This document shows positions 1,190 through 61,963 of a stretch of DNA of 64,000 nt, piece after piece. This stretch comes from Mobula hypostoma (Eukaryota). The DNA lies in assembly GCF_963921235.1 (NCBI RefSeq), contig NW_026948113.1:372001-436000 (forward strand), read 5' to 3'. Made by a program: the position numbers and the translations under genes. Under the pieces are notes generated by a model. The model was not told the DNA's origin. It saw only the letters and a program-made list of their open reading frames with translations, and searched no databases. Every line of letters begins with the position of its first letter. The stretch's first letter is position 1.

Positions 1190-2110
1190 GTACTGCTAAA
1201 GGCCGATGTTAAGCAGGCACTTGATGTACTGAATGCTGCCATCGGCAAGTAAGAAACAGCCTAACCCAATATCTTTCAGATCATTGGTGGAGGCTTTAAT
1301 TAGGCTTGTATGAAGAAATCTCTGCCCAATTAACATCAACATATCACCTGCAGCACCAGGGGTCCCAACATACTCAGCCACTGCTATACTAACATAAGAA
1401 AGAGCTACCATTCAAACTCTAGACTGCATTTTCGGAAATCAGGCTTTATAAAAACAGTTATAGACATTTGTGTCCCCACAAAATCATTCAGAGTCTTCCT
1501 CAACCAGAAGCCCTGGATGAACCATGAGATCCAGAATCCTATGAGGGTCAGATCAGTGACATTCAGTACTGGTGTCCAAGTAAAATAAAAGGGATCTAGG
1601 TGCGATCTCCAGAAAGCCATCTCACATGTACAGTGGCAATTCAAGACCAGACTTGAATCAGTGAAGGATGCTGAACAGCTGTGGCAGGGCTCGGATGCAA
1701 TTACCTCCTACAAGTGAGACCAAGCGACACAGGTAACCACAAGGCTTTGCTGCCAGATGAACTCAAAGCCTTTTATGCTTGCTTTGACCATGGAGGCACC
1801 TTCACAAACTCTCACAGCTCCTGGTGACCCTGTGATTTCAGTCTCTGAAGTCGACGTGAGAACATCCTTCATGAGGCTGAACCCACAGAAAGTATCTGGC
1901 CCAGATGGGGTACCTGCCTGAGTACTAAAGACCTATGCTGATCAACTGGTTGGAGTGTTTACCAATATCTTTAACCTCTTGCTTCACCAGTCTGTGGTAC
2001 CCACCTACTTCAAGTAGTCTTCAACTATACCTGTGCCTAAGAAGAACATAGTAACCTGCCTCAATGCTGTTGTCCCTTTGTACTTACATCCATTGTGATG
2101 AAGTTTGAAA
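1190..2110 (+). mobile_element. Rex1/Babar-type LINE fragment (decayed APE to start of RT)
   Basis: Stop-riddled remnants QHITCSTRGPNIL, NQKPWMNHEIQ and GPDGVP, matching the better-preserved copies at 8015-9814 and 13547-16615. Confidence 0.7.
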
Positions 2111-2112
2111 GG

Positions 2113-2875
2113 GATCCCCCCACCACCAAGCACATCATTCCCTGTCCCCCCACCACCAAGCTCATCATTCCCTGCCCCCCACCACCAAGCTCATTATTCC
2201 CTGCCCCCCATCACCAAGCACATCATTCCCTGCCCCCCACCACCAAGCTCATCATTCCCTGTCCCCCCACCACCAAGCTCATCATTCCCTGTCCCCCCAC
2301 CACCAAGCTCATCATTCCCTGCCCCCCCACCACAAAGCACATCTTTCCGTTCCCCCCACCACCAAGCACATCATTGTGCCCCCCCCACCAAGCACATCAT
2401 TCCCTGCCCCCCACCACCAAGCACATCATTCCGTGCCCCTCCACCACCAGGCACATCATTCCATGTCCGCCCCCACCACATCATTCCACCCCCCACCACC
2501 AAGCACATCATTCCACTCCCCACCACCAAGCACATCATTCCGTGCCCCCCCACCACATCATTCCACCCTCCCACCAGCAAGCACATCATCCCGTGCCCCC
2601 CCACCACCACCAGGCACATCATTCCATGCCCCCGCAACACCAAGTACATCATTCTGTGCCCCCCCACCACCAAGCACATCATTCCCTGCCCCCCCCATCA
2701 CCAAGCACATCATTCTGTGCCCCCCCCACCACATTCCGGCCCCCCACCACCAAGCACATCATTCCACCCCCCCACCACTAAGCACATCATTCCGCATCCC
2801 CCCACCACATTCTGTGCCCCCCCACATCATTCCACCCCCCCCCAACAAGCACATCATTCCGCCCCTTGAAAGCAG
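2113..2875. repeat. C-rich minisatellite, ~29-30 bp unit, roughly 25 degenerate copies
   Basis: Unit CCCCCCACCACCAAG(C)ACATCATTCCCTGY read directly. It explains the overlapping Pro/His-rich ORFs 2095-2948. Confidence 0.95.
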
Positions 2876-3680
2876 AACAATTGCTACACCTGCCCCTACA
2901 TCTCCTCCCCAACTACCATTTAAGGCCCCAAACAGTCCTTCCAGGTGAGGCGATACTTCACTTGTGAGCCTGTTGGGGTCATTTACTGTGTCCGGTTCTC
3001 CCAGCCCAGCCTCCTGTATATCAGTAAGACTCAACGTAAATTGGAAGACCATTTCGCGGAGCACCTATACTCCATCTGCCAGAAGAAGTGTGATCTCCCA
3101 GTGGCCACCCATTTTAATTCCACTTCCCATTCCGATTCCCTCCTCCATGGCCTCCTCTACTGTCATGATGAGGCCACACTCAGGTTGGAGGAACAACATC
3201 TTATATTCCGTCTGGGTAGCCTCCAACCTGATCGCATGAACATCAATTTCTTGAACTTCCGTTAATGCCCCCCCCCCACCTTCTCCTTCACCATGCCCCT
3301 TTCGCTCTCTCACCTTATCTCCTTGCCTGCCCATCACCTCTGTCTGGTGCTTCTCCTCACTTTTCTTTCTTGCATGGCCTCTGTTCTCTCCTATTGGACT
3401 CCCCCTTCTCCAGCCCTGTATCTCTTTCACCAACCAACATCCCAGCTCTTTACTTCATCCCTCCTCCTCCCAATTTCATCTATCACTTTGTGTTTCTCTC
3501 TCCCCTCCCCCACCTTTTAATTCGACTCCTCATTTTTTTTCTCCAGTCCTGCCAAAGGGTCTCGGCCTAAGATGTCAATTGTACTTTTTTTCCATAGATG
3601 CTACCTGGGCTGCTGAGTTCCTCCAGCATTTGGTGTGTGTTGCTTGGAATTCCAGCATCTGCTGATTTTCTCTTGTCTGT
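2866..3680 (+). mobile_element. Penelope-like element 3' part (GIY-YIG remnant plus terminal repeat)
   Basis: ORF 2945-3265 (YFTCEPVGVIYCVRFS...LLYISKTQRKLEDHFAEHL...LRLEEQHLIFRLGSLQP) is a PLE GIY-YIG domain. A decayed hammerhead-like motif lies at 3544-3581. Confidence 0.85.
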
Positions 3681-4395: not shown

Positions 4396-5960
4396 GAATT
4401 AAGTTGGCTTTATTTCTTACATCCTTCATATACCTGAGGAGTAAAAACGTTACGTCTCTGTCTAAATGTAGAATGTGCAATTTATAGTAATTTATAATAA
4501 ATGGTATGAACAACAGGACAGTCAATATAACATAGAACTATACTTGTATCAGCATGAATTAATCAATCTGATGGCCTGGTGGAAGAAGCTGTCCCGGAGC
4601 CTGTTGGTCCTGGTTTTTATGCTGCGGTACCATTTCCTGGATGGTAGCAGCTGGAACAGATTGCAGTTGGGGTGACTCGGGTCCCCAACGATCCCAGCCC
4701 TTTTTACACACCTGTCTTTGTAAATGTCCTGAATAGTTGGAAGTTCACATCTACAGATGCGCTGGGCTGTCCACACCACTCTCTGCTGAGTCCTGCGATT
4801 GAGGGAAGTACAGTTCCCATACCAGGCAGTGATGCAGCCAGTCAGGATGCTGTCAATTGTGCCCCCGTAGAAAGATCTTAGGATTTGGGGGCCCATACCA
4901 AACTTCTTCAACCATCTGAGGTGAAAGAGGCACATGAAATCCTCGGTGATGTGGATGCCGAAGAACTTAAAGCTGTTCACCTTCTCAACCCCAGATCCAT
5001 TGATATCAATAGGTGTTAGCCTGTCTCCATTCCTCCTGTAATCCAGAACCTGCTCCTCTGTTTTTGCGACATTGAGGGAGAAGTTGTTTTCTTGACATCA
5101 CTGTGTCAGGGTGATGACTTCCTCTCTGTAGGCTGCCTCATTGTTATTTGAGATAAGGCCAATCACTACAGTGTGGTCAGAAAATTTAATCAGCAGATTG
5201 GAGCTGTGGGTAGTGACACAGTCATGGGAATACAGAGAGTAAAGGAGGGAGCTTAGGACACAGCCCTGAGGGGCATTTGGGTTGAGGGGCAGAGGTGAAG
5301 GCGCCCACTCTTACAAACTACCAATGATCTGACAGGAAGTCCAGGATCCAGCTACACAAAGTAGGGTGAAGGCCGAGGTCTCTGAGCTTCCTGTCGAGCC
5401 TGGAGGGAATTATGGTGTTGAATGCTGAACTGCAGACCAAGAACAGCATGCTCACATAAGCATCCCTCTTTTCCTGGTGTGAAGAGCTGTGGGTAATCGT
5501 CTGTCAATCAGTTGTATCAGTAGACAAATTATAGGTGATCCAGTTTATGTGGTAGCAAACTGCAGATGCAGTCCTTGAGCAGCCTATCAAAGCATTTGCT
5601 TATTACTACAGGACGCCAGTCGTTCAGACATGTTACCTTGGGCTTTTTCGGTACAGGAACAATGGTGGATGTTTTGAAGCAGGAGGGCACTCTACACTGG
5701 GAGAGGGAGAGATTAAAAATGTCCGTAAGCACACCTGCCAGTTGTGCCGAGCACACTCTGAGTACCCGGCCAGGGAAGCCATCTGGTCTCGAAGCCTTGC
5801 GACTGCCCACTCATTGGAAACACTTGCATATTTCAGCCTCCGAGATGACCGGGCTGCAGGTCGCATGGAATATACTTCTTGCATTGGATATACACAGTTC
5901 AGGACATTAGTTGTACCATGCTCAATCTTTTAGCATAGACTTAGTCTGAGGTCTTAGCAA
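4395..5960 (-). mobile_element. Rex1/Babar-type LINE, 5'-truncated, with deletions
   Basis: ORFs 4549-4980 (FKFFGIHITED...SILTGCITAWYGNC) and 5529-5810 ([33 protein letters not shown]). Confidence 0.85.
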
Positions 5961-8014: not shown

Positions 8015-9814
8015 AACCAGAGGGATGCCAGTAGACTATGGCAGGGTCTAAATGAGATCACTGGGCACAAAGAAAAGGCTGGGAATATCAATAACTGTGG
8101 TGCTTCTCTTCCTGACAAACTTAATGTATTCTACGCAAGATTCAAAGAGAAGAGGGGCATCCTGCTCCCTCCGGATGAACCGGACCTGGTGGCGTTGAGA
8201 TTCATCGTCACTGAGGAGGATGTTAGAAGGACCTTCCTGAAGATAAATCTAAGGAAGGCGACGGGCCCAGATGGTGTCCCAGGACGGGTTCTCCGTCATG
8301 TGCAAACGAGCTAGCTGGAGTGTTTGCTGACATCTTCAACTGCTCCTTGCTTCAGTCTAAGATCCCCTCGTGTTTTAAGAAGGCAATGATAATCCCAGTG
8401 CTGAAGAAGAGCAAGGTGGCATGCCTGAATGACTATCGACCTGTGGCTCTGACATCAATCGCTATGAAGTGCTTCAAGCGATTGGTTATGGCACACATCA
8501 ACCACAGCCTACCGGTCAACCTCGACGCTTTGCAATTCGCCTACTGGAGCAACAGGTCAATGGCAGATGCCATCTCTCTGGCCCTACATTCCTCCTTAGA
8601 ACTCCTGGAGAATAAAGACGACTACGTAAGGCTCCTTTTTATTTACTACAGCTCTGCCCTTAATACCAACTTTCCAAATAAACTGATTCCTAAGCTCCGG
8701 AACCTGGGCCTTAGCACTCAGATCTGCAGCTGGATCTTCAACTTCCTCACAGACAGGACCCAGGCTGTAAAAACAGGGGACAAGCTCTCCTCTACAATCA
8801 CTCTGAGCACTGGTGCCCCACAAGGCTGTGTACTCAGCCCCCTGCTGTACTCACTGTACATCCATGACTGTGTAGCCAAGTTTCCATCGAACTCAATATA
8901 TAAGTTTGCTGATGACACAACGATTGTTGGCTGTATCTTGGGTAATGATGAGTTTGAGTACAGAGATGAAATTAAGAACCTGGTGGCATGGTGTGAAGGC
9001 AATAACCTATCCCTCCATGTCAGCAAGACGAAGGAATTGGTTGTTGACTTCAGAAGGAGTAGTGGACCACACGACCCAATTTACATCGGTGGTGCGCAAG
9101 TGGAACAGGTCAAAAGCTTTAAGTTCCTCGGGGTCAATATCACAAATGACCTGACTTAGTCCGACCAAGCAGAGTCCACTGCCAAGAAGGCCCACCAGCG
9201 CCTTTACTTCCTGAGAAAACTAAAGAAATTTGGCCTGTCCCCTAAAAACCCTCACTAATTTTTATGGATGCACAACGGAAAGCATTCTTCTAGGGTGCAT
9301 CACAACCTGGTATGAAAGTTGTCCTGTCCAAGACCGGAAGAAGCTGCAGAAGATAGTGAACACAGCGCAGCACATCACACAAACCAATCTTCCACCCTTG
9401 GACTCACTTTACACCGCACGCTGTTGGAGCAGTGCTGCCAGGATAATCAAGGACACGACCCACCCAGCCAATGGACTTTTCGTCCCTCTTCCCTCGGGGA
9501 GAAGGCTCAGGAGCTTGAAGACTCATACGGCCAGATTTGGGAACAGCTTCTTTCCAACTGTGATAAGACTGCTGAACGGATCCTGACCTGGATCTGGACC
9601 ATACCCTGCAAAAATCCGGACCTGCCTCTCAGTTTTTTTGCAGTACCTTACTTTCCATTTTTCTATTTTCTATTTATGATTTATAATTTAAATTTAAAAT
9701 CTTTACTATCAATTTGTACTCCAGGGAGCGGGAAGCACAGAATCAAATATCACTGTGATGATTGTACATTCTAGTATCAATTGTTTGGTGACAATAAAGT
9801 ATAAAGTATAAAGT
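8015..9814 (+). mobile_element. Rex1/Babar-type LINE, 5'-truncated, relatively young; RT domain
   Basis: ORF 8320-9159 carries [28 protein letters not shown] and YKFADD. There is a frameshift near 8296, a TAG at 9157-9159 and a frameshift near 9245. The 3' end is AATAAA plus an (AAAGTAT)n tail. Confidence 0.92.
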
Positions 9815-13546: not shown

Positions 13547-16500
13547 ATCAGAATCAGAATCAGGTTTATTGTCACCGGCATGTGATGTGAAATTTCTTAA
13601 CTCAGCAGCAGCAGTTCAATGCAATACATAATCTAGAAGAGAGAAAAAATAAAAGTAATAATAATAAATAAGCAAACAAGTAAATCAATTACAGTATATG
13701 TATATTGAATAAATTTTTTTTAAATGTGCAAAAAACAGAAATACTGTTTATTAAAAAAAGTGAAGTAGTGTCCAAGAGTTCAATGTCCATTTAGGAAGCA
13801 GACGGCAGAGGGGAAGAAGCTGTTCCTGAATCGCTGAGTGTGAGCCTTCAGGCTTCTGTGTCTCCTACCTGATGGTAACAGTGAGAAAAGGGCATGCCCT
13901 GGGTGCTGGAAGTCCTTAATGATGGACGCTGCCTTTCTGAGACACCGCTCTCTAAAGATGTCCTGGGTACTGTGTAGGCTAGTACCCAAGATGGAGCTGA
14001 CTAGATTTACAACCCTCTGCAGTTTCTTTCAGTCCTGTGCAGTAGTCCCTCCCCACACCCCTCCCCCCCATACCAGACAGTGATGCAACCTGTCAGAATG
14101 CTCTTCATAGTAAAATTATAGAGGTTTTTGGGTGTATCTGTTGACATGCCAAATCTCTTCAAACTCCTAATGAAGTACAGCTGCTGTCTTGCCTTCTTTA
14201 TAACTACATCGATATGTTGGGACCAGGTTAGATCCTCAGAGATCTTGACTCCCAGGAATCTACTTACTCTCTCCAGTTCTGATCCCCCTGTGAGGATTGG
14301 TATGTGTTCCTTTGTCTTACCCTTCTTGGAAGTCCACAATCAGCTCTTTTATCTTACTGGCGTTGAGTGCCAGGTTATTGCTGAGACACCATTCCATTAG
14401 TTCACATATCTCACTCCTGTACATCCTCTCATCACCACCTGAGGTTCTACCAACAATGGTTGTATCATCAGCAAATTTATAGATGCTATTTGAGCTATGC
14501 CTAGCCACACCGTCATGTGTATATAGAGAGTAGGGCAGTGGGCTAAGCCCACACCCCTGGGGTGCGCCAGTGTTGATCGTCAGCGAGGAGATGTTATCAT
14601 CAATCTGCACAGATTGTGGTCTTCCGGTTAGGAAGTCAAGGATCCATTTGCAGGGGGAGGTACAGAGACCCAGGTTCCGCAACTTCTCAATCAGGGTTGT
14701 GGGAATGATGGTATTAAATGATGAGCTACAGTGTATTCGGTGAACAGCATCCTGATATAGGTGTTTGTGTTGTCCAGGTGGTCTAAAGCCATGTGGAGAG
14801 CCATGGAGATTGCTTCTGCCGTTGACCTATTGAGACGATAGGCAAATTGCAATGGGTCCAGGTCCTTGCTGAGACAAAAGTTCAGTTTAGTCATGACCAA
14901 CCTCTCAAGGCATTTCATCACTGTCGATGTGAGTACAGTACTACCGAGTGATAGTCATTAAGACAGCCCACATTATTCTTCTTAGGCACTGGTATAATCG
15001 TTGCCTTTTTGAAGCAAGTGGGCACTTCCGCCCGTTGCAGTGAGAGGTTGAAAATGTCATTGAATACTCCCGCTAGCTGGTTGGCACAGGTTTTCGGAGC
15101 CTTACCTGGTACTCCATCAGGACCTTTCGCCTTGTGAGGGTTCATTCTCTTTAAAGGCAGCCTAATAGCGGGCTCTGAGATGGAGATCACAGAGTCATCA
15201 GGTGCAGCAGGGATCTTCACAGCAGTAGTTGTGTTCTCCCTTTCAAATCAGGCATAGAAGGCATTGAGTTCATCTGAGAGTGAAGCATCGTTGCCATTCA
15301 TACTATTGGGTTTTGCTTTGTAGGAAGTAACGTCCTGCAGACCCTGCTGGAGTTGTCGTGCATCCGATGTCACCTCCAACCTCGTTCAAAATTGTCTCTT
15401 CACCTTTGAAATAACCCTCTGCAAATCTGGTTTTCTGGTACAGGCCTGGATTGCCAGACTTTATTAGATTAGATTAGATTATGAAGACTATTAGATTATG
15501 CAGACCTCTTTTATTGTCATCTAGTAATGCATGCATTAAGAAATGATACAATATTTTCTCCGGTGTGATATCACAAAATATAGGACAGACCAAGACTGAA
15601 AAGCTAACAAAACCACATAATTATAACATATAGTTACAATAGTGCAACAATACCATAACTTGATGAAGAATGCCACAGATCTAGCCTTCAGCAGATGATG
15701 TAACTCCTGGTTCATCCATGGGTTTTGGTTTGGGAATGTACAGCAAGTCTTTGCAGGCACACACTCATCCACACAGGTTTTAATGAAATCGGTAACAACT
15801 GCAGCATAATCCAAATTTGAAGATGAATCCATGAATATAGTCCAGTCTACCAACTCAAAGCAGTCCTGTAGGCGCTCCTGTGCTTCCCTTGTCCATACCT
15901 TCTCAGTCCTCACTACTAGTGATGCAGTCTTCAGTCTCTGCCTATACTCAGGGAGTAGAAGTACAGCCAGGTGATCAGACTTCCCAAAGTGAGGGCATGG
16001 AATAGCATGGTAGGCATTCTTGATGGTGTTGTAGCAATGGTCCAGTGTGTTGTTTCCTCTGGTATTGCAAGTGATCTGTTGATGGTAAATGCTTAGTGAT
16101 CTGTTCAGACTGGCCGGGTTAAAATCTCCCAAAACAATTTTGAAGGCATGAAGGTGCACTGTTTCATGCATGTTGATCCCATTGCTCAGATCATCTAAAG
16201 CCTGCTTGACATTGGCCTGAGGTGGAATGTAAACTGCTACCAAAATGACCCCCGAGAACTCCCGTGATAGGTAAAAAGGACAGCACTTAACTGCTAGATA
16301 TTCCAGGTCTGGTGAGCAGAATTGGGACAGCACTGATATTTGTGCACCAAGAAGAGTTGATCATGAGGCATACTCCTCCACTTCTGCTTTTGAGAGACTC
16401 CTTAGATCTATCCTCATGGTGTATAGTAAACCCGTCGATCTGAATCGCTGAATCTAGTACAGAAGGGGTTAACTAGGATTCCGTGAAACAAAGGACACAC

Positions 16501-30109: not shown

Positions 30110-30390
30110 ACCCAGTGATTGGAGGAGTTTTGTGCTGAGCAGTTTTCCTCGGGCTGTTCGGAGGTTCCTGAAATCTCCCGCCGGATTTGTTGCAACACAA
30201 CAGGAAGTGGTTTGGCTCCGCTCCCTCCCGCGATCAGCCGACACTCCGCTGCCCACACAGTCATTTCTGTAGAAGGATTTTCAGTTACTGGCTGCACCTG
30301 CACCGACTGGCCGCGTCTGTGAATCTCACTCCACCCTCAGCACTTCACTGACTAACAATCAGGGTTCAGTCGATGCGAGGAGTTGTCGCA
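30110..30390 (+). promoter_or_regulatory. Candidate CpG-rich, TATA-less promoter/5'UTR of the class I-like gene
   Basis: Inverted CCAAT (GATTGG 30117-30122), GTTGCAAC at 30189-30196, ETS CAGGAAGTG at 30201-30209, and local CpG enrichment upstream of the ATG. Confidence 0.5.
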
Positions 30391-30466
30391 ATGGAGAGCT
30401 GGACCGGACCGGTATCGCTCCTTGTCACCGCGTTATCTCTCTGCTCTGTCGCGGGAGACCAGGCAG
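30391..30466 (+). CDS. MHC class I-like gene, exon 1 (signal peptide)
   Basis: GCAATGG Kozak; MESWTGPVSLLVTALSLCSVAGDQA; phase-1 donor G|GTGAGG, which joins exon 2 to give D-S-H-S-L. A weaker in-frame ATG lies at 30373. Confidence 0.8.
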
Positions 30467-39944: not shown

Positions 39945-40205
39945 GCTTCAGCTACATACAAGCACTCTGGGGCTGCGCACAATCTGGAGATACGGTCAAC
40001 GCGATTCTAAAAGCCAACTTCCAGGATTTCGGAGTGGTCAGCTGTGATATCAACACAGGGAAATGCACTGGCACTGGTTTCCTAGCAATGTTCAATGATC
40101 AATTGAGCCAATTCAGATTCACTGACGTGACTGCATTGAAGAGTAACTGCACTTGGTATTTGCAAAGGGCTGTTCAGCTTGGAAGAGAAGCATTGGAAAG
40201 GCAAG
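39945..40205 (+). CDS. MHC class I-like gene, exon 3 (alpha2 domain)
   Basis: TTTGCAG acceptor; 261 bp, phase 1/1. Translation SFSYIQALWGCAQSG...VSCDINTGKCTG...KSNCTWYLQRAVQLGREALERQ contains the canonical Cys pair. The donor is AG|GCAAGT. Confidence 0.9.
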
Positions 40206-40224
40206 GCAAGTGGAACATCCTGCG

Positions 40225-43760: not shown

Positions 43761-44462
43761 CACACACAGTATGAGACACTGCCCCTGGAGTCATTCTCAC
43801 TACACTATGATGCCCTAACAGATGAGGAATGGACAATTAAGAACAAAAATACCCCTGCTTGGATGTTTGATATCCTCTGTGTTGCTAGTTCACTTTTTGC
43901 TGTTTGTGCAATCTGTTCCCTCCCTGCATCTTGCGTGTTTGATGTTTTCTTTGAACGGGTTCCTTGGTGCCTCTTTGTTCCTTCGCTGCATCGGAGGATA
44001 AACCTCAGAGTTGTATTCTGTATAAACAATTTGGTAATTAATCTACTTTGAATCTTTGAGTGAGGGCGCTCCCAAATGGAGACATTGACTGATCTCCCGG
44101 TCTGGGGCAGTGAGGGACCTTCTGATCAATACTGCTGTGCTGAGGGCATTCTCCATCTTGCAGTTTGAGGATGATCTGAATTTGGGATATTGCACGACTG
44201 CTGGACTGGGAATAGTGCCTGTGACCTTGATCTGGACCTGTCCGATGAATGAAAGTAATCTCTGTCTGTAGTCTGCATGAGCTTGGGCTGGGGAGGCTGA
44301 TTTCAGATTAGATGGTGAGTGTAATAGTGAGGCCGATCACATTCTGAGGCAGTGAAGGATGTGAGAGTAATCCCAACATTGAACACTGTAACTTCAGTCT
44401 GTAACGGTAAGGTAACATCAGCCTGAGTTGAGGAGGTGACATAATTTTTGATTCTTCCCCAG

Positions 44463-44738
44463 TTGCTCCAGAGACTCAGGTGTTGACAAGGAGGCCGACA
44501 GCTACTGAAGGCAAGAGTCTGTCGTGCATCATCACTCCCTTCTACCCCTGTGCTATCAATGCCACTTGGCTGAAGAATGGGCAGGTTGTCTCTGAGGGCT
44601 ACAACGTGACTGTGCTACCAAACTACAATGATACATACTGGATGGAACTAGTCATTGAGCTGCAGGGCAACGACCCGAACATCTATACTTGTCATGTCGA
44701 GCACAGCAGCCTGCCAAAGGCCCTGATGGTGAAGGGAG
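44463..44738 (+). CDS. MHC class I-like gene, exon 4 (alpha3 Ig C1 domain)
   Basis: TTCTTCCCCAG acceptor and G|GTAGGT donor; 276 bp, phase 1/1. C1-set motifs LSC...FYP...W.KNG...LPN.N.TY...YTCHVEHSSL. Confidence 0.95.
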
Positions 44739-47031
44739 GTAGGTCATTGTACGGTACAGGATTTGCTTCATTCTGCCTGTGGTGGTTCATGGACTCATGC
44801 AGCAGAGAAGGGGGCTCTTCAGTCTACCTGATTCATGCAAATCCAATTCATGCAAACCCTCTAGTTCTCAAAAACACTTGGCCCGTCCCCTTCTTTAACT
44901 CGATGATTCAACTGCTCATCTAGATACGTCTTGAAAATTATAGAGGTCTCTGCCTCCACCATCTCCTCAGGCAGTCCATTCCCAACTCCAAAAACCCCCT
45001 TGATGAAAGTATGCTTCTGTAGATTCCCTATAAACCTCTTAGTCATTATCTTAAACCTACGTCGAGTTATAGGCACCTTTACTATGGGGAAAAGTTTACT
45101 ACTGTTCAAGCAAACACATGAAGTGGAAGCATAAACTGCAGCAAGTAAAACCTGTAGCATTCTTCAGAATCAGAATCAGGTTTACTGTTGCTGGCATCTG
45201 TTGTGAAATTTGTTAAGTTAGCAGCAGAACAATGCAATGCATGATAATATAGAAAAAATATAGAACAAGTAAGTAAATCAACTACAATAATTATATATAT
45301 GTATATTGAACAGATTTTAAAATAGTGCAAAAACAGAAATAACATATATTTTAAAAAGTTCTTCCAACATTTTCTATGTATTTCCTATCTACACCCCTAA
45401 TAATTCTGTATAACTCCATCAGGTCCACCCTCAGTCTCCTCCCATCTAAAGAAAACAAAACCAGTGTATCTATTCTCTCTTCTCATTCCATCTGAGCCAC
45501 ATTCCGGCGAATCTCCTCCGCACTCTGTCCAATGCAATCACATCTCTCCTCTGCTCTGGTGACCAGAACTGTAAACAATACTCAGAATGTAGCCTCACCG
45601 ATGTTTTATAAAGCTGTACCATAATTCCCATGCCCTTGTATTCCATGCACTGATAACTGGTATCTCATACACTTCCTTCACCACCCTATTTACCTCTTTG
45701 AAAGACCTAATCAAGCATCTCCACCATAAAGCTGCACCATAAGTTCCCTTCTCTTGAATTCTATGCCCTGATCAGTGAAATCCAGCATCCTGTAGGCTAT
45801 CTTCACCACCTTGTCCTCTACTTTGAATGACTTGCTCAAGTAGCCCCACTCTTTCTCACACACCTCTGAAAATTTCTTAATTCCAAGAACATATCCCATT
45901 TCCATTTTGGAAGTTATTATTTACCGTGCTCTTTTATCACTTGAATTAAATCTGTTCCTTCTGCTCACCAGATGTTACAGAAGCAGTTGAGCTGTTGGTC
46001 AAAGAAATATAGTAAGAACTCAACAGAAATAACAACTAAGAAGCAATTGGGACTGTGGGGAAGACCTGACTGTCAAGTGGTCACTGCCTGGCTGTTGGGT
46101 GTTTGATTGTCATAGATTCGTAGAATTCTGCAACAGAGAAACAGACCCTTCAGCCCAACATGCCTTTGTCAATCAAGATTTCCATTCAAAGAAGTCCCAT
46201 TTATCCTGGCCCATATCTCCCTAAACCCTTTAGACCCATTTACTGGTGGATGTATCTTTTAAAAGATGTTAACTTGTCTGCCTCAACCACTTCTTCTGGC
46301 ACCCATAAATTGACCATCATGTTGCCACTCAGGTTCCTGTTACATCTTTTCTCTCTTAACTTAAACCTATACCATCAGGAGCCCTGAAAAATTATTGTGC
46401 ATTCTCTCTATGCCCCTCAAAATTTTATATACTTCTCTCTATAGCTCAGCCCCCTACACTCCAGGGAAAATAATCCCAGCCTATCTTGTCTCTCATTATT
46501 TCTCAAGCATTCCATTCCTGGCACCATCCTTGTGAATCTCCTCTGCATCCTTTCCATCCTAATGACATCCTTCCTTCCTCAAAGCACCTTCTATTTTCCT
46601 ATCCTGCAATATATAAGATACTACCCACCCAGGACTACCCTCCCCCACACCCCCCCCCCCGCCCCCCGCTTCTCCAGCTCCCATCAGGCACAGATACAAA
46701 AGCCTGACAGAATGTACTACTATGATCAATGAACACTTCTGTCTTTCTCCTGTGAGAAAATTGAGTGGACCCAAACATAGTAAGATAGGCATCTGACCTC
46801 ACAATCTAACTTTTAATGGTCTTGCATCCTATTGCCAGCTAGCACCACACATCCTCTGTAAAAGTAATACATTACTCTGCATTCTGTTATTGTTTTCCCT
46901 TGTACAAACTTAATATCCTGATGTAATGATTTGTATGGACGGAATGCAAAACATGTATTTCCACTGTACCTGGTAACTGGTGACAATAATAAAATAATTT
47001 ATACATTTACCGATCTTTACTTGGTGAACAG

Positions 47032-47108
47032 GAGTTGGTGAGCCCCATGGTGCAGGTCCTATGTTGGGGCTGATGACTGTGTTTGCGATAATCTTTGGAA
47101 TGATGTAG
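47032..47108 (+). CDS. MHC class I-like gene, exon 5 coding part (C-terminal hydrophobic segment ending in TAG)
   Basis: Phase-1 acceptor; GVGEPHGAGPMLGLMTVFAIIFGMM*. The exon continues to donor GTGGGT (after 47144) or GTAAAC (after 47148). It is colinear with the paralog at 61963-61851. An alternative in-frame acceptor lies at 47054-47055. Confidence 0.82.
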
Positions 47109-47234
47109 AGGTGCAGCAAGGAGAGAACCAAGACATCACTGGAGGTGGGTAAACGTACAGATGCCTTTGTTAAACCTGCTTGCTGTGACAGTATTAGACT
47201 GTACATTCAACCTCCTCTCTTTTCTCCTTTGCAG

Positions 47235-48375
47235 ATCAGCATTTGGCTCTAACTCAAGCACAGTTCTGAACACAGGGTGCAGCTTCAAACAGGCTTTTTT
47301 GATGAGTGACCGCACACCTCAGCAAGCTTAGAATCAGAATCAGATTTAATATCACTGGCATTGATTGTGAGATTTGTTAACTTTACAGCAGCAGTACAAT
47401 GAAATTTACAATAAATAAAAAACTGAGTTATATAAAGTATATTTATGGCTGTTAAGTTAAAATAAGTAGTGCAAAATAACAGAAATAAAAGAAGTAGGAA
47501 GTAGTGTTCATGGGTTCAATGTCCATTGATAAATCGGCTGGCAGAGGGGAAGAAGCTGTGCCTTCAGGCTTCTGCGCCTCCTTCCTGATGGCTCCAGTGG
47601 GAAGAGGGCATGTCCTGGGTGGTGGTGGATGTAGCCTTCCTAAGGCATCGCTCCTTGAAGATATTTTGGATACTATGGAGGCTGGTACCCCGATAGATCT
47701 GACTAATTTTACAAGTTTCTGCAATTTGTTTCAAACTTGTCCAGTAGTCCCTCATAAGAGATGCTGATGCAGCCAGTCAAAATGTTCTCCATCGTACATT
47801 TGTAGAAGTTTTTGAGTGTTTTAGTTGACCTACAAAATCAACACAACCTCCCAATAAAATACAGCCGCTGTCTTGGCTTCTTTATAACTGCATCCTCAGA
47901 GATGTTGACACCTAGGAACTTGAAATTGCTCATTTTCTCCACTTCTGATCCCTCTATGAAGATAGGTTTAGCGTTACATCCACTGTGGGAACTTGCCTGC
48001 TGAATCTTCTGCTGCTTTGAACAGCTCCCGTTTAGCTATGTCTTAAATTTTTTCTTACATCTGAGAAAGATTTCAAGTTTCAGTCTTGCAGTGCACTGAT
48101 GTTTGACACTCATTTGTAAGGTCCCTCTCCAGTCCTAATTCCACCACAAACGCCATATGTCAAATCATTGCTCTGAAGTATGAATGCCTGTTTTGAACAC
48201 TGGACAGCCAAGAGTAATTCTTTTCTTCATTGGAGATTGGCAGGGTCCAACATTTAGTTTATAATATGAGCAGAAACTCTGGAATGCTGTGGCAATTTGG
48301 TGAATGAGAGAGTACAAAATTTGAGGATTATACAATGGAATAAATATGGTTACTTTCCCTGTTGTATTGTTGGGC
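47235..48375 (+). other. Terminal (3'UTR) exon of the class I-like gene
   Basis: Strong acceptor CCTCCTCTCTTTTCTCCTTTGCAG. Homology to the paralog 3' end runs on both sides of a LINE insert. AATAAA at 48349-48354. Confidence 0.65.
47332..47967 (-). mobile_element. Rex1-type LINE 3' fragment inserted in the 3'UTR
   Basis: (ATTCTG)n tail, TTAG on both sides (47328-47331, 47968-47971), and absent from the paralog. Confidence 0.85.
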
Positions 48376-49609: not shown

Positions 49610-51170
49610 AGCCCCGATGGGGCACCTGGCCGAGTACTGAAGACCTCTGGTGATCATGTCACTGGAGTCTTCACTTAAAGCTTTAACCTCTCACTTCAGC
49701 AGTCTCAGGTACCCATCTGCTTCAAGCAGGCTTCAACCTCACTGGTACCAAAGAAGAATGTGGTAACCTACCCCAGTGACCATCATCCTGTAGCACCTAC
49801 ATCCACTGTGATGATGTATTTTGAGAGGTTACTGATGAAACATATCAACTCATGTCTGAGAAACATCTTGGATCCATTCCAATTTGCACACCTTTACAAC
49901 AGGTCCACAGCAGATGCCATTTCATTGGTTCTTCACTCAACCCTGGAACATCAGGACAGCAAAGGTGCATACAACACAATACTCTTTATAGGCATTTAAT
50001 AGTATCACCCCCTCCAAAGTAATCAATAAGCTTCAAGACCTTGGCCTTAATATCTCCGTGTGCAATTGGATCCTCAATTTCCTCGCATGTAAACACCAGT
50101 CAGTTCAGATTGCCAGCAACATGTCCATCAGCACAGATACACCACAAGGCTATGTGCAGGGCACCCTGCTGTACTTGCTTTATACTTTTGGCTGTGTGGC
50201 TATGCACAGCTCCAATGCCATATGTAACTTTGATGGTGACACACTTGTTGGCTGAATCAAAGGTGGTGATGAATTAGCATGTAGGAGGCAGATTGAAAAT
50301 CTAGCAGAGTGGCACCACAACAACAATTTCTTACTCAATGTCAGCAAGATCAAGGGGCTGATTATTGACTTCGGGAGGAAGAAACCAGAGCTCTATGAGT
50401 CAGTCCTCATCGAGGGATAAGATGTGGAGAGGGTTGGAGACTTTAAATTCCTCGGTGCTATTACCTCAGATGATCTGTGCTGGGCCTAGCAGTAAGTACC
50501 ATTACTTCCTTAATTTTGTGAAGATTTGGCATAAAATCTAAAACCTTGATAAATATTTACAGATGGATGGTGGAGGGTACATTGACTGGCTGCATTGCAG
50601 CCTATTATGGAAACACTAATGCCCTTGAATGGAAAATCCTACAAACAAATAGTGGATGCAGCCTCGTCCATCACGGTTAGAGTCCTCTGTACCAGTGAGC
50701 ACAACTACATGGTGAGCTGCTGCAGGAAAGCAGCATCCATCATCAAGGATGCCCACCACCCAGGCCTTGCTCTCTGCTCTCTGCTGCCATCAGCAAGAAG
50801 GTACAGGAGCGTCAGGGTTTTCACCACCAGGTTCGGAAACAGTCACTATCCCTCAACTATTTGGCTTTTGAACCAGAAGGGACATCTTCACTCACTCCAT
50901 GACTGAACTGTTCACACAACCTATGAACTCACTTTTAAGGTCTCTTCATCTCATTTTGTCAACACTGTATTTGTTGATTGCATATTTATTTATTTAGTTA
51001 CTTATTTAGTACTTTGCACAGTTTTTTTGTTTTTCCCTCCTGTTGAGTGCAGACCTTTGATGATTCTATCGTGTTTCTTGGATTTGCTGTGTATGTCCAA
51101 TAGAAAACCAATCTCAGGGTTGTATATGGTAACATATACATTCTTTGATAATAACATTACTTTGAACAGA
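49610..51170 (+). mobile_element. Rex1/Babar-type LINE RT remnant
   Basis: ORFs 49760-49999 (DPFQFAHLYNRSTADAIS), 50058-50255 (PQGYVQGTLLYLLYT) and 50595-50906. Confidence 0.8.
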
Positions 51171-53859: not shown

Positions 53860-56720
53860 TACCTCTTTTGAATTATTCTCACTGCGATCTGCAGCGTGTA
53901 ATTTCCCTTTAAGCAATATACTTTTAAATTGAGGTTGGGTTGGACTATGAAGCGTCTGTTAAGGTTTCCTTTTTGTTTTTTGTTTCCTCTTTTACTGTAC
54001 TATTTAAATAGCTGTGATGCGCTCTTCGTGCCAGATGTTGGAGAACTAGGAGACCCAGAATCTCCTGGAGATCTACATCTGCATGAAATGCATCTGCCTG
54101 CAGCTCCTTGAAGACCATGTCAGGGATCTGGAGCAGCAACTGGATGACCTTTGGCTTGTACGGGAGAGTGAGGACATAACTGATCAAAGTTACAGGGAAG
54201 TAGTTACCCTGAAATTGCAGGTGAATAGCTGGGTGACTGTTAGTAGAAACGGAAATAGGCAGTTAGAGCAGAGCACCCCTGCGGCCATTCCCCTCAAAGG
54301 GTGGTGAATTTGTGGAATTGGTTGCCACATGCAGCTGTGGAGGCCGGGTCATTGGGTGTACTTAAGGCAGAGATTGATAGGATGTTGATTGGACATGGCA
54401 TCAAAGGTTACAGGGAGAAAGCCAGGAACTGGGGTTGAGGAGGAGAAGAAAAAAAAAATCAACCATGATTGAATGTCAGAGAAGACTTGATGGACCAGAT
54501 GGCCGAATTCTGCTCCTGTGTTTTACGGTCTTATGGATACTGGATCTGCTGTTAGGGAATGATACAGGGCAGGTGACATAAGTTTGTATAGGGCAACATT
54601 TTGCATCCAATGCCCATAATGCCATTATTTTCAAGGTAAATATGCAAAAAGGAAGGTCTAGTCCACGGGCTGAGATTCTAAATTGGAGAAAGGCTAATTT
54701 TGATGGTATAAGAGAGAATCTGGTAGTGTGGAGTGTGGATTGTGAATTGCTGTTTTCTGACAAAGGTGTACTTGGAAAGTGAGAGGCCTTCAAAAACAAA
54801 TTTTGAGAGTACAAAGCTTGTATGTACTTGTCATGTAAATGGTAAAGATAACAAGTGCAGGGAACCTTGGTTTTCAAGAAATATTGAGGCCCTTGTTCAG
54901 AGAAAAAGGAGGTGTCTAGCAGGCACAGGCAGGGAGGAACAAATGAGGTGCTTATGGAGTACAAGAAATGCAAGAGAACACTTAAGAAAGAAATCGGGAA
55001 GGCTAAAAGAAGACATGAAGTTGCTCAAGCAGAGAAGGTGAAGGAGAATCCCGAAGGATTCTATAGATATGTTAAGAGCAAAAGGATTGCAAAGGACAAC
55101 ATTGGTCCTCTGGAAGACCAGAATAGTAATCCATGTGTGGAGCTGAAACAGATGAGGGAGATCTTCAATACATTCTTTGCATCTGTATTTACTCGGGAGA
55201 CAGACACAGAGTCAATAGAAGTGAGGCAAAGCAGCATCAACTTCACGGACCCTTTGCAGATTATAGAGGAGGAGGTGTTTGTTACCCTGAGGGAAATCAG
55301 TGTGTATATAATCCCAGGGCCTTACAAGATATTCGCTCAGACCCTATAGGAGGGAAGTGCAGAACTTGCCAGGGCCATAGCTGAGATATTTTAAACCTCC
55401 CTAACAACAGGAGAGGTACCAGAGGACTGGAGGATAGCCAATGTTTTTTCTGCTGTTTAAAAAAGGCTATAAATAGAAACAAGGAAACTATAGGTCGGTG
55501 AGTTTGACATAAGTTGTGGAAAATTTATTGGAAGGTATTCTAAGGGACCGGATATACAAGTATTTTGATAGACATGGAATAATTAAGGATAGTTGGCATA
55601 GCTTCACGTGTAGTAGCTTCAGTTGCTCAGTATTCAGGATGAGGTAGTAAATTGGATTAGTCATTGGCTTTGTGGGAGGAGCCAGAGAGCAGTGGTAGAC
55701 AATTGCCCTCTGACTGGAGGCCTGTGACTAGTGGTGTTCTGCAGGGATCGGTGCTGGATCCTTTGTTGTTTGTCATCTATATCAATGATCTGGTTGATAA
55801 TGTAGTTAACTGGATCAGCAAATTTGCGGATGATACCAAGGCTTGGGGTGTAGTGGACAGTGAGGAAGGTTATCATGGCTTGCAGACAGATCTGCATCAG
55901 CTGGAAAAGTGGGCTGAAAAATGGCAATGCAATTTAGCGCAGACAAGTGTGAGGGGTTGCACTTTGGCTGGGCCAGCCAGGGTAGGTCTTACACAGTCAA
56001 TGGTAGGGCACTGACAAATGTGTTTGGAAAAAAGGGATCTGGGAATACGGGTCCATTATTCTTGGAAAGTGGTGTTCCAGGTAGATGGGGTTGTAAAGGA
56101 AGGTTTTGGCATTTTGGCCTTCATAAATCAAAGTATTGAGTACAGAAGATGGGATGTTATTTTGAAGTTGTATGAAATGTTGCGGAGGCCTAATTTGGAG
56201 CATTGTGTGTAGTTTTAATCAGGAAAGATGTAAACAAGGTTGACAGAGAAAAGTATGGGGGAGGGGGAGAGTAAGAGGACCTGAGTTATAAGGAAAGATT
56301 GAATATGTTAGGAATGTGTTCTTTAGAATTTAGAAGACTGAGAGAAGATTTGATAGAGGTATACAAAATTATGAGGGGCATAGATAGGGTAAATACAAAC
56401 AGGCTTTCTTTTTCACTGAGGTTGGCTGGTACTACACCTGGATTAAGAGTGACAGGTGAGAAGTTTAAGAGGAACATGAGGAGAAAGTTCTTCACCCAGG
56501 GCATTGTGAGGGTGTGGAATGAGCTTCTGGCACAAGTGGTTCATGCAAGCTCAATTTCAATGCTTAACAGAAGTATGGATAGGTACGTGGAGAGTAGGGA
56601 TATGGAGGGCTATGGTCCCGGAGTAGGTCAATTGGAATAGGCAGCTTAAATGGTTTTGGCATGGACTAGATGGGCTGAAGGGCCTGTTTCTATGCTGTAC
56701 TTCTCCATGATTCTATGATC
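53860..56720 (+). mobile_element. CR1 LINE, ORF1 to 3' end, with deletions
   Basis: ORF1 CMKCICLQLLEDHVRDLEQQLD, ORF 54912-55349, ORF 55664-56014 (VTSGVLQGSVLDPLLFVIYINDL...KFADD) and an (ATTCTATG)-like tail. Confidence 0.9.
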
Positions 56721-61765: not shown

Positions 61766-61886
61766 CTGCAAAAGAAAAGTGAGAAGAGATTGATTGAGCA
61801 ATACTGTGACAGCAAGCAGGATTAGTGAAAGGACCTGCGTGTTTACCCACCTGTACTAAAGCCTTGACTCTCTCCTTGCTGCTCCT

Positions 61887-61963
61887 CTACACCACTTTAA
61901 CCATCATCGTAAGTGTCGCCATCAGCCCCAGCAAAGGACCTGCACCACGAGGCTCCCCGGCTC
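61887..61963 (-). CDS. Paralogous class I-like gene, C-terminal exon coding part
   Basis: GAGEPRGAGPLLGLMATLTMMVKVV*. 56/77 nt identical, ungapped, to 47032-47108, with the same acceptor context, same TAG position and same GTGGGTAAAC donor. Confidence 0.85.

Follow-up and report, generated by a model that had tools for sequence, protein, structure and literature searches.

How is an MHC class I-like protein held at the membrane when its reading frame ends directly behind a short hydrophobic segment? The question is raised by two genes in the stretch of Mobula hypostoma DNA analyzed here (the window; 64,000 nucleotides), in which positions 47032-47108 of the forward strand read (G)GVGEPHGAGPMLGLMTVFAIIFGMM, with a TAG stop codon at 47106-47108. 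The first of these, gene 1, is an intact five-exon MHC class I-like gene with a spliced product of 312 amino acids that is 100% identical to an NCBI protein from the same species (P0007). The second is an inverted paralog whose alpha domains fall past the right end of the window. The features of both are as follows.

30373..30466, + strand: gene 1 exon 1, leader (signal peptide); donor GTGAGG, phase 1; 100% identical to P0007
37608..37856, + strand: exon 2, alpha1 domain; weak Pfam MHC_I match; aligned to 8gm8
39945..40205, + strand: exon 3, alpha2 domain; GC donor (GCAAGT) at its end
44463..44738, + strand: exon 4, alpha3, Ig C1-set domain; Pfam C1-set E 3.5e-14; RNA joint 44738/47032 in four runs
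47032..47105, + strand: exon 5, coding part; candidate omega triad G-V-G, spacer EPHGAGP, hydrophobic end MLGLMTVFAIIFGMM
47106..47108, + strand: TAG stop, at the putative former transmembrane (TM)/cytoplasmic boundary
47109..47144, + strand: exon 5, post-stop part (3'UTR), 36 nt, purine-rich; conserved core GCAGCAAGGAGAGA
47145..47234, + strand: 3'UTR intron, 90 nt; joint 47144/47235, GT..AG, in four runs; conserved in 10 genes
47235..47401, + strand: next (3'UTR) exon; RNA contigs break in a repeat from about 47330
61890..61963, - strand: paralog, coding part of last coding exon, (G)AGEPRGAGPLLGLMATLTMMVKVV; UFA B sublineage
61887..61889, - strand: paralog TAG, in the same alignment column as the gene 1 stop
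61851..61886, - strand: paralog, post-stop exon part, 36 nt; then donor GTGGGT at 61850

Gene 1 has one exon per domain and every intron is in phase 1; the same five-exon structure was rebuilt exactly for nine genes, with joints seen in RNA. The phase-1 splice from the alpha3 exon (44463-44738) fixes the frame of exon 5, so the TAG lies in the true reading frame, and the C-terminus written out in a preliminary description of this DNA was recovered in that frame with the same letters and the same stop. The exon 47032-47144 is bounded by the acceptor ..gaacag and the donor gtgggt, and the codon of the candidate omega Gly is split by the intron in front of it. At the other end of the protein, the N-terminus MESWTGPVSLLVTALSLCSVAGDQA has, judged by eye, a hydrophobic core and a small-residue cleavage region. 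There are two in-frame ATGs 18 nt apart, at 30373 (the NCBI start, MRGVVA-MESW...) and at 30391, the second of which starts our 312-residue model; the C-terminal finding is unaffected by the choice.

Contigs from four RNA runs (X1-X3 from the same organism, X5 carrying another organism label) were mapped on 44400-47900. Two GT..AG joints, 44738/47032 and 47144/47235, were common to all four runs, and alpha3, exon 5 and the downstream exon were all bridged by single contigs. RNA word depth reached 2924 on exons in X1 and was 0-15 in introns, which indicates that the transcripts are spliced and that gene 1 is well expressed. The letters at 47106-47108 were unchanged in the contigs of X1-X3, with no other letter reported; together with the identical NCBI protein, this bears out the earlier argument that the stop is not a sequencing error. 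In X5, for which the differences are listed in part only, 47100 is changed from A to G (Met to Val), in agreement with the ...GVM ending of Mobula birostris proteins. The preliminary description had named an mRNA with a different TM/cytoplasmic exon as one case that would overturn its reading; the only GT..AG joint leading out of alpha3 in the contigs of the four runs, which drop rare forms, goes to exon 5.

The intron between alpha2 and alpha3 begins with a GC donor (GCAAGT, 40206-40211) that is kept in seven of the nine rebuilt genes, from Heptranchias (a shark) to rays (gene 1 and loci L002, L003, L004, L006, L007 and L008); a GT donor after alpha2 occurs among the nine only in Hemitrygon A (GTAAGT) and Amblyraja (GTAGGT). 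In RNA, a loose end before 44461 matches the 3' end of exon 3, which shows that the GC donor is in use. At about 47330-47700, and at 46500-46740 and 45100-45450, RNA word depth climbs as high as about 18,000, loose ends and unusual joints are numerous, and these stretches behave like dispersed repeats (SINE-like, AGAATCAGAATCAGATTTAATATCACTGGC...). The repeats break the contigs and so limit the mapping of the 3' end of the gene 1 mRNA. The window also contains reverse-transcriptase-like open frames on both strands (4552-5930, 8227-9583, 13783-16360, 49679-50903, 55661-56637 and others), and the class I-like genes are embedded in retrotransposon-dense DNA. A low-complexity tandem array at 2041-2945 (+) gives long open frames in all three forward frames, with a Pro/His/Thr-rich repeat (..PPTTKHIIPCPP.. 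and similar).

The class I lineage to which these genes belong was identified by comparisons of sequence and structure. Used alone, the alpha3 exon matched Pfam C1-set at 53.3 bits (cut-off 21), the alpha1 exon matched MHC_I weakly and below the cut-off (E 0.002), and the alpha2 exon had no Pfam match. Among 1.84 billion representatives, the alpha2 exon retrieved two proteins, which opened the family when searched with. The best match to gene 1 among solved structures by phmmer was 8gm8_A (E 2.9e-59, residues 33-291), followed by 9ch4_A (4e-28) and by MR1, CD1c and HLA (around 1e-22 to 1e-26). An AF2 model of gene 1 (pLDDT 67; below 50 and hence uninformative for the tail, residues 296-318) likewise superimposed best on 8gm8_A (Z 22.1, 38% identity) and next on 9ch4_A, UGA (Z 22.0, 28% identity). 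PDB entry 8GM8 is titled 'Crystal structure of shark nonclassical MHC CLASS I, UFA'. In a maximum-likelihood tree built without a classical class I outgroup, the nurse-shark 8GM8 protein (P0028) grouped with Chiloscyllium (100/100) inside a shark clade that stands opposite a batoid clade, matching the species tree. Because 8GM8 is the best match and its protein falls inside the family, we assign the window genes by sequence to UFA, the nonclassical, MHC-linked class I lineage of sharks and rays; they are not, as first supposed, an undescribed lineage.

UFA is multicopy in Mobula, Hemitrygon and Hypanus, with an A group that includes gene 1 and a B group that includes the paralog. The A group expanded separately in Mobula and in Hemitrygon/Hypanus, and the B group comprises Hemitrygon P0001, M. 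birostris P0003 and a partial M. hypostoma model (P0016), which fits the paralog of the window. Among recent A duplicates in Mobula, Hemitrygon and Hypanus, the dN/dS of alpha2 was 1.2-1.6 in three of four pairs and 0.89 in the fourth, and that of alpha3 in the same pairs was 0.3-0.4 (all single-pair estimates); selection on alpha2, the ligand-binding domain, may be relaxed or diversifying.

On the reverse strand, the last coding exon of the paralog starts at 61963 and its TAG occupies 61889-61887, which gives a tail of the same length as that of gene 1. The last 10 residues differ at every position (TVFAIIFGMM in gene 1, ATLTMMVKVV in the paralog). The RNA runs contain much of the 3' region of the paralog (share 0.56 in X1). 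The equal length, the identical position of the TAG and the complete divergence of the last 10 residues, as first described, can all be read from the two exons, and the stop is indeed shared and real. The further argument that it had been kept in two separate copies has to be softened, since the introns of the two are still alignable (72-75% identity) and the common TAG is therefore one ancestral inheritance and not two independent events. In a side comparison of A with B (L008, the M. birostris B gene), dS was 0.24 in alpha3 and 0.44 in the tail exon, as against 0.82 in alpha1 and 1.33 in alpha2; this likeness in the 3' half suggests gene conversion or exon shuffling between the paralogs.

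Evidence that is independent of the two window copies comes from the rest of the lineage. In all 26 full-length relatives the protein stops at a single alignment column, behind a run of 13-15 hydrophobic residues, and no more than one of its last 13 residues is charged or polar (D, E, K, R, H, N, Q). These proteins represent 16 named species from four batoid and six shark orders, plus one skate-like sequence (Logan), and cover rays, sawfish, skates, an electric ray and sharks (Mobula, two species; Hemitrygon, Hypanus, Pristis, Amblyraja, Narcine isoform X1, Cetorhinus, Carcharodon, Mustelus, Pristiophorus, Heterodontus, Chiloscyllium and Heptranchias). Exact coding sequences were rebuilt for nine genes, and the last coding exon with its flanks was aligned for ten genomic copies from seven species; in each of the ten, the stop codon is TAG and occupies an identical column. 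The isoforms that NCBI lists for the shark genes vary elsewhere in the protein and retain the C-terminus; hydrophilic ends are predicted by NCBI in Narcine only (the exon-skipping isoforms X2 and X3).

Between shark and batoids the upstream intron is 36-46% identical, which is essentially random, whereas the coding part of the tail exon is 55-59% identical; the hydrophobic tail, with a pairwise identity of 53-61%, is roughly on a par with alpha1 in conservation. At deeper nodes, dN/dS over the whole gene is about 0.4 (alpha3, 0.3-0.4), and by this measure the UFA gene is under purifying selection. For the tail exon, with its 25 codons, dN/dS is noisy (0.2-1.15), and variation is least at second codon positions, a pattern that fits selection on the character of the tail and not on its exact residues. 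When drift was simulated from the gene 1 tail, the stop and the hydrophobicity were both retained in 12% of trials at 0.3 substitutions per site, in 2.5% at 0.6, in 0.5% at 1.0 and in 0.08% at 2.0. Given many independent lineages, chance retention of the tail-less design can be dismissed. The arrangement noted in the two Mobula copies (small residues, a spacer, a hydrophobic end of about 15 residues and no tail) is thus real, expressed and present in every elasmobranch order sampled, and the breadth of its conservation strongly favors a functional membrane-attachment signal, as judged from these alignments.

The same observations bear on two readings in which the ending is not an attachment signal. 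Were gene 1 a transcribed pseudogene or an annotation artefact, the TAG would be a disabling mutation in recent duplicates, and it does sit inside a formerly longer open frame and is held by the two window copies through descent. The five exons are, however, intact, properly spliced and highly expressed; intact relatives exist in the 16 named species, with no frameshift or stop seen in UFA orthologs; the whole-gene dN/dS is that of a constrained gene; and the ectodomain of the nurse-shark relative has been crystallized (8GM8). We give this explanation practically no weight. It is also improbable, if less so, that the product is mostly not anchored at all, being secreted, shed or kept in the ER, with the hydrophobic end acting as a retention or degradation signal or with an exon-skipped soluble form dominating. 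The Narcine isoforms with hydrophilic ends would suit such a product, as would the lower depth of the exon-5-bearing contig relative to that of alpha3 in X1 (2133 versus 2924) and the behavior of MICA*008, which is made soluble first and is slow to mature. Against it stand the single joint out of alpha3 in all four runs and the hydrophobic end and stop position, kept in 26 of 26 proteins contrary to drift, which are hard to square with a dispensable exon.

Behind the stop, the exon runs on for another 36 nt in rays and sawfish, or 41 nt in skate and shark, before a conserved donor is reached; a short intron and a conserved exon come next. Read in frame, this stretch gives RCSKERTKTSLE in Mobula gene 1, RSSKERVKALVQ in the Mobula paralog, RRGAMRREARCDN in Amblyraja and RPRAAGREERYNH in Heptranchias, and by its sequence it looks like the fossil basic start of a class I cytoplasmic tail. 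A core rich in purines, GAGCAGCA(A/G)GGAGAGAG, is conserved within it between sharks and rays (47109-47144; 61851-61886 on the reverse strand; equivalents in L001-L008), and 36% of the columns of the stretch are invariant, as against 14-24% in the flanking introns. A special constraint on the G of the TAG was also considered and was not significant against the 14-24% of invariant intron columns.

Such conservation behind a stop raises the prospect of dual anchoring, in which some ribosomes would read through the UAG, so that a small share of the protein would be transmembrane and carry a short basic tail, beside the terminated form. The UAG in 10 of 10 genomic copies, the 12-14 following codons that are stop-free to the donor and encode basic residues, and a core conserved from shark to ray with more invariant columns than the introns are what it would predict. 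Yet a 5-nt indel directly after the stop separates rays and sawfish from skate and shark, and a 1-nt indel in the next exon separates A from B copies, so no extension peptide is conserved. Variable sites are spread over the three codon positions (7, 3 and 5 of 12 at positions 1, 2 and 3) with no third-position bias. The tract is T-poor and, in gene 1 (the only copy read in this way, by eye), open in all three frames, which makes the openness of the post-stop frame uninformative. We know of no readthrough motif of the form UAG-A/G-G. On the indels, the absent third-position bias and the openness of all gene 1 frames, we reject a conserved readthrough peptide and regard dual anchoring as very unlikely. 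A purine-rich splicing enhancer is a simpler account of the conservation, and the core is probably such an enhancer or another RNA-level element of the 3'UTR.

These features suggest a history for the stop. In an ancestor of sharks and rays, the TAG would have arisen exactly at the junction of a class I TM segment and its basic cytoplasmic tail, and the old cytoplasmic exons would survive as spliced 3'UTR. In mammals, a stop less than 50-55 nt from the last exon junction avoids nonsense-mediated decay. Were the same rule to apply here, the UFA mRNA, with its stop 36-41 nt before the last mapped junction, would be spared.

What, then, does the conserved ending do? We consider it likely that the UFA protein is held on the cell surface by a glycosylphosphatidylinositol (GPI) anchor, with the exon 47032-47144 encoding the predicted attachment signal. 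After cleavage of the signal peptide, the alpha1-alpha3 ectodomain would fold in the ER, and GPI transamidase would cut at a Gly of the GGVG cluster, the likeliest site being G/V-G. With the second Gly of GGVG as omega, V would be omega+1, G omega+2 and EPHGAGP omega+3 to omega+9, with the hydrophobic run from omega+10. The ectodomain would then be passed to the GPI lipid and the mature protein would lie in the outer leaflet, without cytoplasmic sorting or signaling motifs. By our own rule-based scan, an omega-like triad of small residues stands 7-10 residues ahead of the hydrophobic run in every member: G-V-G with a spacer of 7 in rays and sawfish, and G-V-S (7), G-S-S (7) or G-G-S (8) in sharks. 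For two skates the spacer is 4 by the run definition used, or 10 when MLVL is counted as the start of the run.

The main rival is a tail-less TM anchor, in which the hydrophobic end would stay uncleaved in the bilayer, a very short anchor whose C-terminus is free and carries no cytoplasmic tail. On a simple Hessa sum (a home-made heuristic without position weighting or a TM/GPI control set), the best 19-residue window came to between +1.2 and +5.8 kcal/mol for 24 of the 26 proteins, values that disfavor membrane integration, and to about 0 for the two skates. By this rough score the stretch appears to lack the length and the hydrophobicity of a membrane-spanning helix, and a GPI signal fits best. 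The core run comprises just 13-15 residues and begins after Pro or Gly; in several members K, R or E stands 2-3 residues before the end, so that the apolar stretch shrinks to 11-12 residues; the run is not followed by basic stop-transfer residues; and the small-residue cluster lies at omega-site distance in all members. Several observations nevertheless count against a GPI signal, and all of them but the short linker count for an uncleaved anchor. The uncharged stretch GAGPMLGLMTVFAIIFGMM of gene 1, from GAGP to the end, is 19 residues long, and that of the skates, where the score is near zero, is about 21; the candidate omega site is merely 2-3 residues past the end of the alpha3 domain, a short linker; and the tail, with a conservation near that of alpha1, is conserved beyond the strict need of a discarded propeptide. 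A search restricted to alpha3 returned family members only, with no classical class I that could serve as a TM control, and the last 40 residues, searched against the Atlas, matched C1-set fragments only, which are silent on anchoring.

Engineered and natural variants of MICA illustrate both outcomes. MICA*008, whose truncated TM segment ends at a premature stop, is GPI-anchored, whereas the MICA*004-stop construct, with its TM segment truncated, gained no GPI anchor; there, a stop alone did not suffice. This caution, together with the fact that the omega and hydrophobicity assessments are our own heuristics, is why we place the GPI anchor no higher than likely. The tail-less TM anchor we consider unlikely, though it is the alternative to be taken most seriously.

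With a GPI anchor as the preferred reading, part of the picture is already known: UFA is an established lineage, and the GPI-linked class I-like design obtained through a truncated TM exon is familiar from mammals. A tail-less UFA with a GPI-type signal, fixed across all sampled elasmobranch orders, appears to be unreported in the literature searched. That literature, which included no primary UFA paper, contained no statement on the membrane anchor of UFA, described no class I molecule with a GPI link from any fish and did not mention 8GM8, and its text matches to 9CH4 were unrelated to the PDB entry. The group behind 8GM8 may well be aware of the UFA ending.

For the broader proposition, that UFA, CD1-like and reportedly lipid-binding, acquired a GPI anchor before sharks, skates and rays diverged and has kept it in all of them, we lean slightly toward acceptance. 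If it is true, no other MHC-like molecule with a GPI link would come near UFA in age. The GPI-linked class I-like molecules known otherwise are scattered, young mammalian cases (Qa-2, ULBP/RAET1, MILL, MICA*008); here the same design would be fixed in a whole ancient lineage of cartilaginous fish that is under study as a possible counterpart of CD1. Trafficking and lipid loading of a GPI-anchored UFA would be independent of cytoplasmic motifs, which would limit the sites of ligand acquisition and the means of signaling. Lipid presentation would proceed without tail-directed endosomal sorting, and the lipids would be picked up, as by CD1a, on the cell surface, within rafts or in recycling compartments. 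PI-PLC release offers a simple, testable handle for work on shark and ray immunity. The locus would also illustrate how one stop codon between TM segment and cytoplasmic tail can convert a class I gene whose former cytoplasmic exons are kept as spliced 3'UTR.

Among known systems, CD1 is one comparison. NCBI labels some UFA members 'CD1d-like' or 'CD1c-like', but by sequence UFA is not nearer to CD1 than to other class I proteins (CD1c E 1.3e-23, MR1 2.4e-26, HLA about 1e-22), and in the structural ranking UFA and UGA are followed by chicken YF1 and classical class I. CD1b, CD1c and CD1d carry a tyrosine-based endosomal sorting motif in the cytoplasmic tail; UFA, having no cytoplasmic tail, is without it. 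Reviews describe UFA as CD1-like in its groove and lipid-binding, on data that are unpublished or communicated personally, and its pairing with beta2-microglobulin is likewise given in a review as a personal communication. The reviews also call UFA single- or low-copy, in contrast to the multigene groups of Mobula, Hemitrygon and Hypanus described above. The crystallized construct (8GM8) is the ectodomain only, of 265 amino acids.

ULBP/RAET1 and MILL, mammalian families of NKG2D ligands, resemble UFA in having class I-like ectodomains, some of them GPI-anchored. Some RAET/ULBP members are GPI-linked, and ULBP/RAET1 proteins lack alpha3 and beta2-microglobulin. UFA, in contrast, has a C1-set alpha3, and no kinship in sequence with these families is apparent beyond the class I fold. 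Closer in design are Qa-2 (Q7/Q9) and MICA*008, which took the route proposed here for UFA: a class I TM exon is shortened by a stop, no tail remains and the downstream cytoplasmic exons serve as UTR. Mouse Qa-2 is GPI-anchored through a stop in exon 5. Both are mammalian and arose independently of elasmobranch UFA. MICA*008 needs a frameshifted peptide and follows a slow, non-canonical route to its anchor, whereas GPI attachment of UFA is a prediction. They differ in reach as well: MICA*008 is a human-specific allele and Qa-2 a mouse locus, whereas the UFA stop is lineage-wide and older than the split of sharks and rays.
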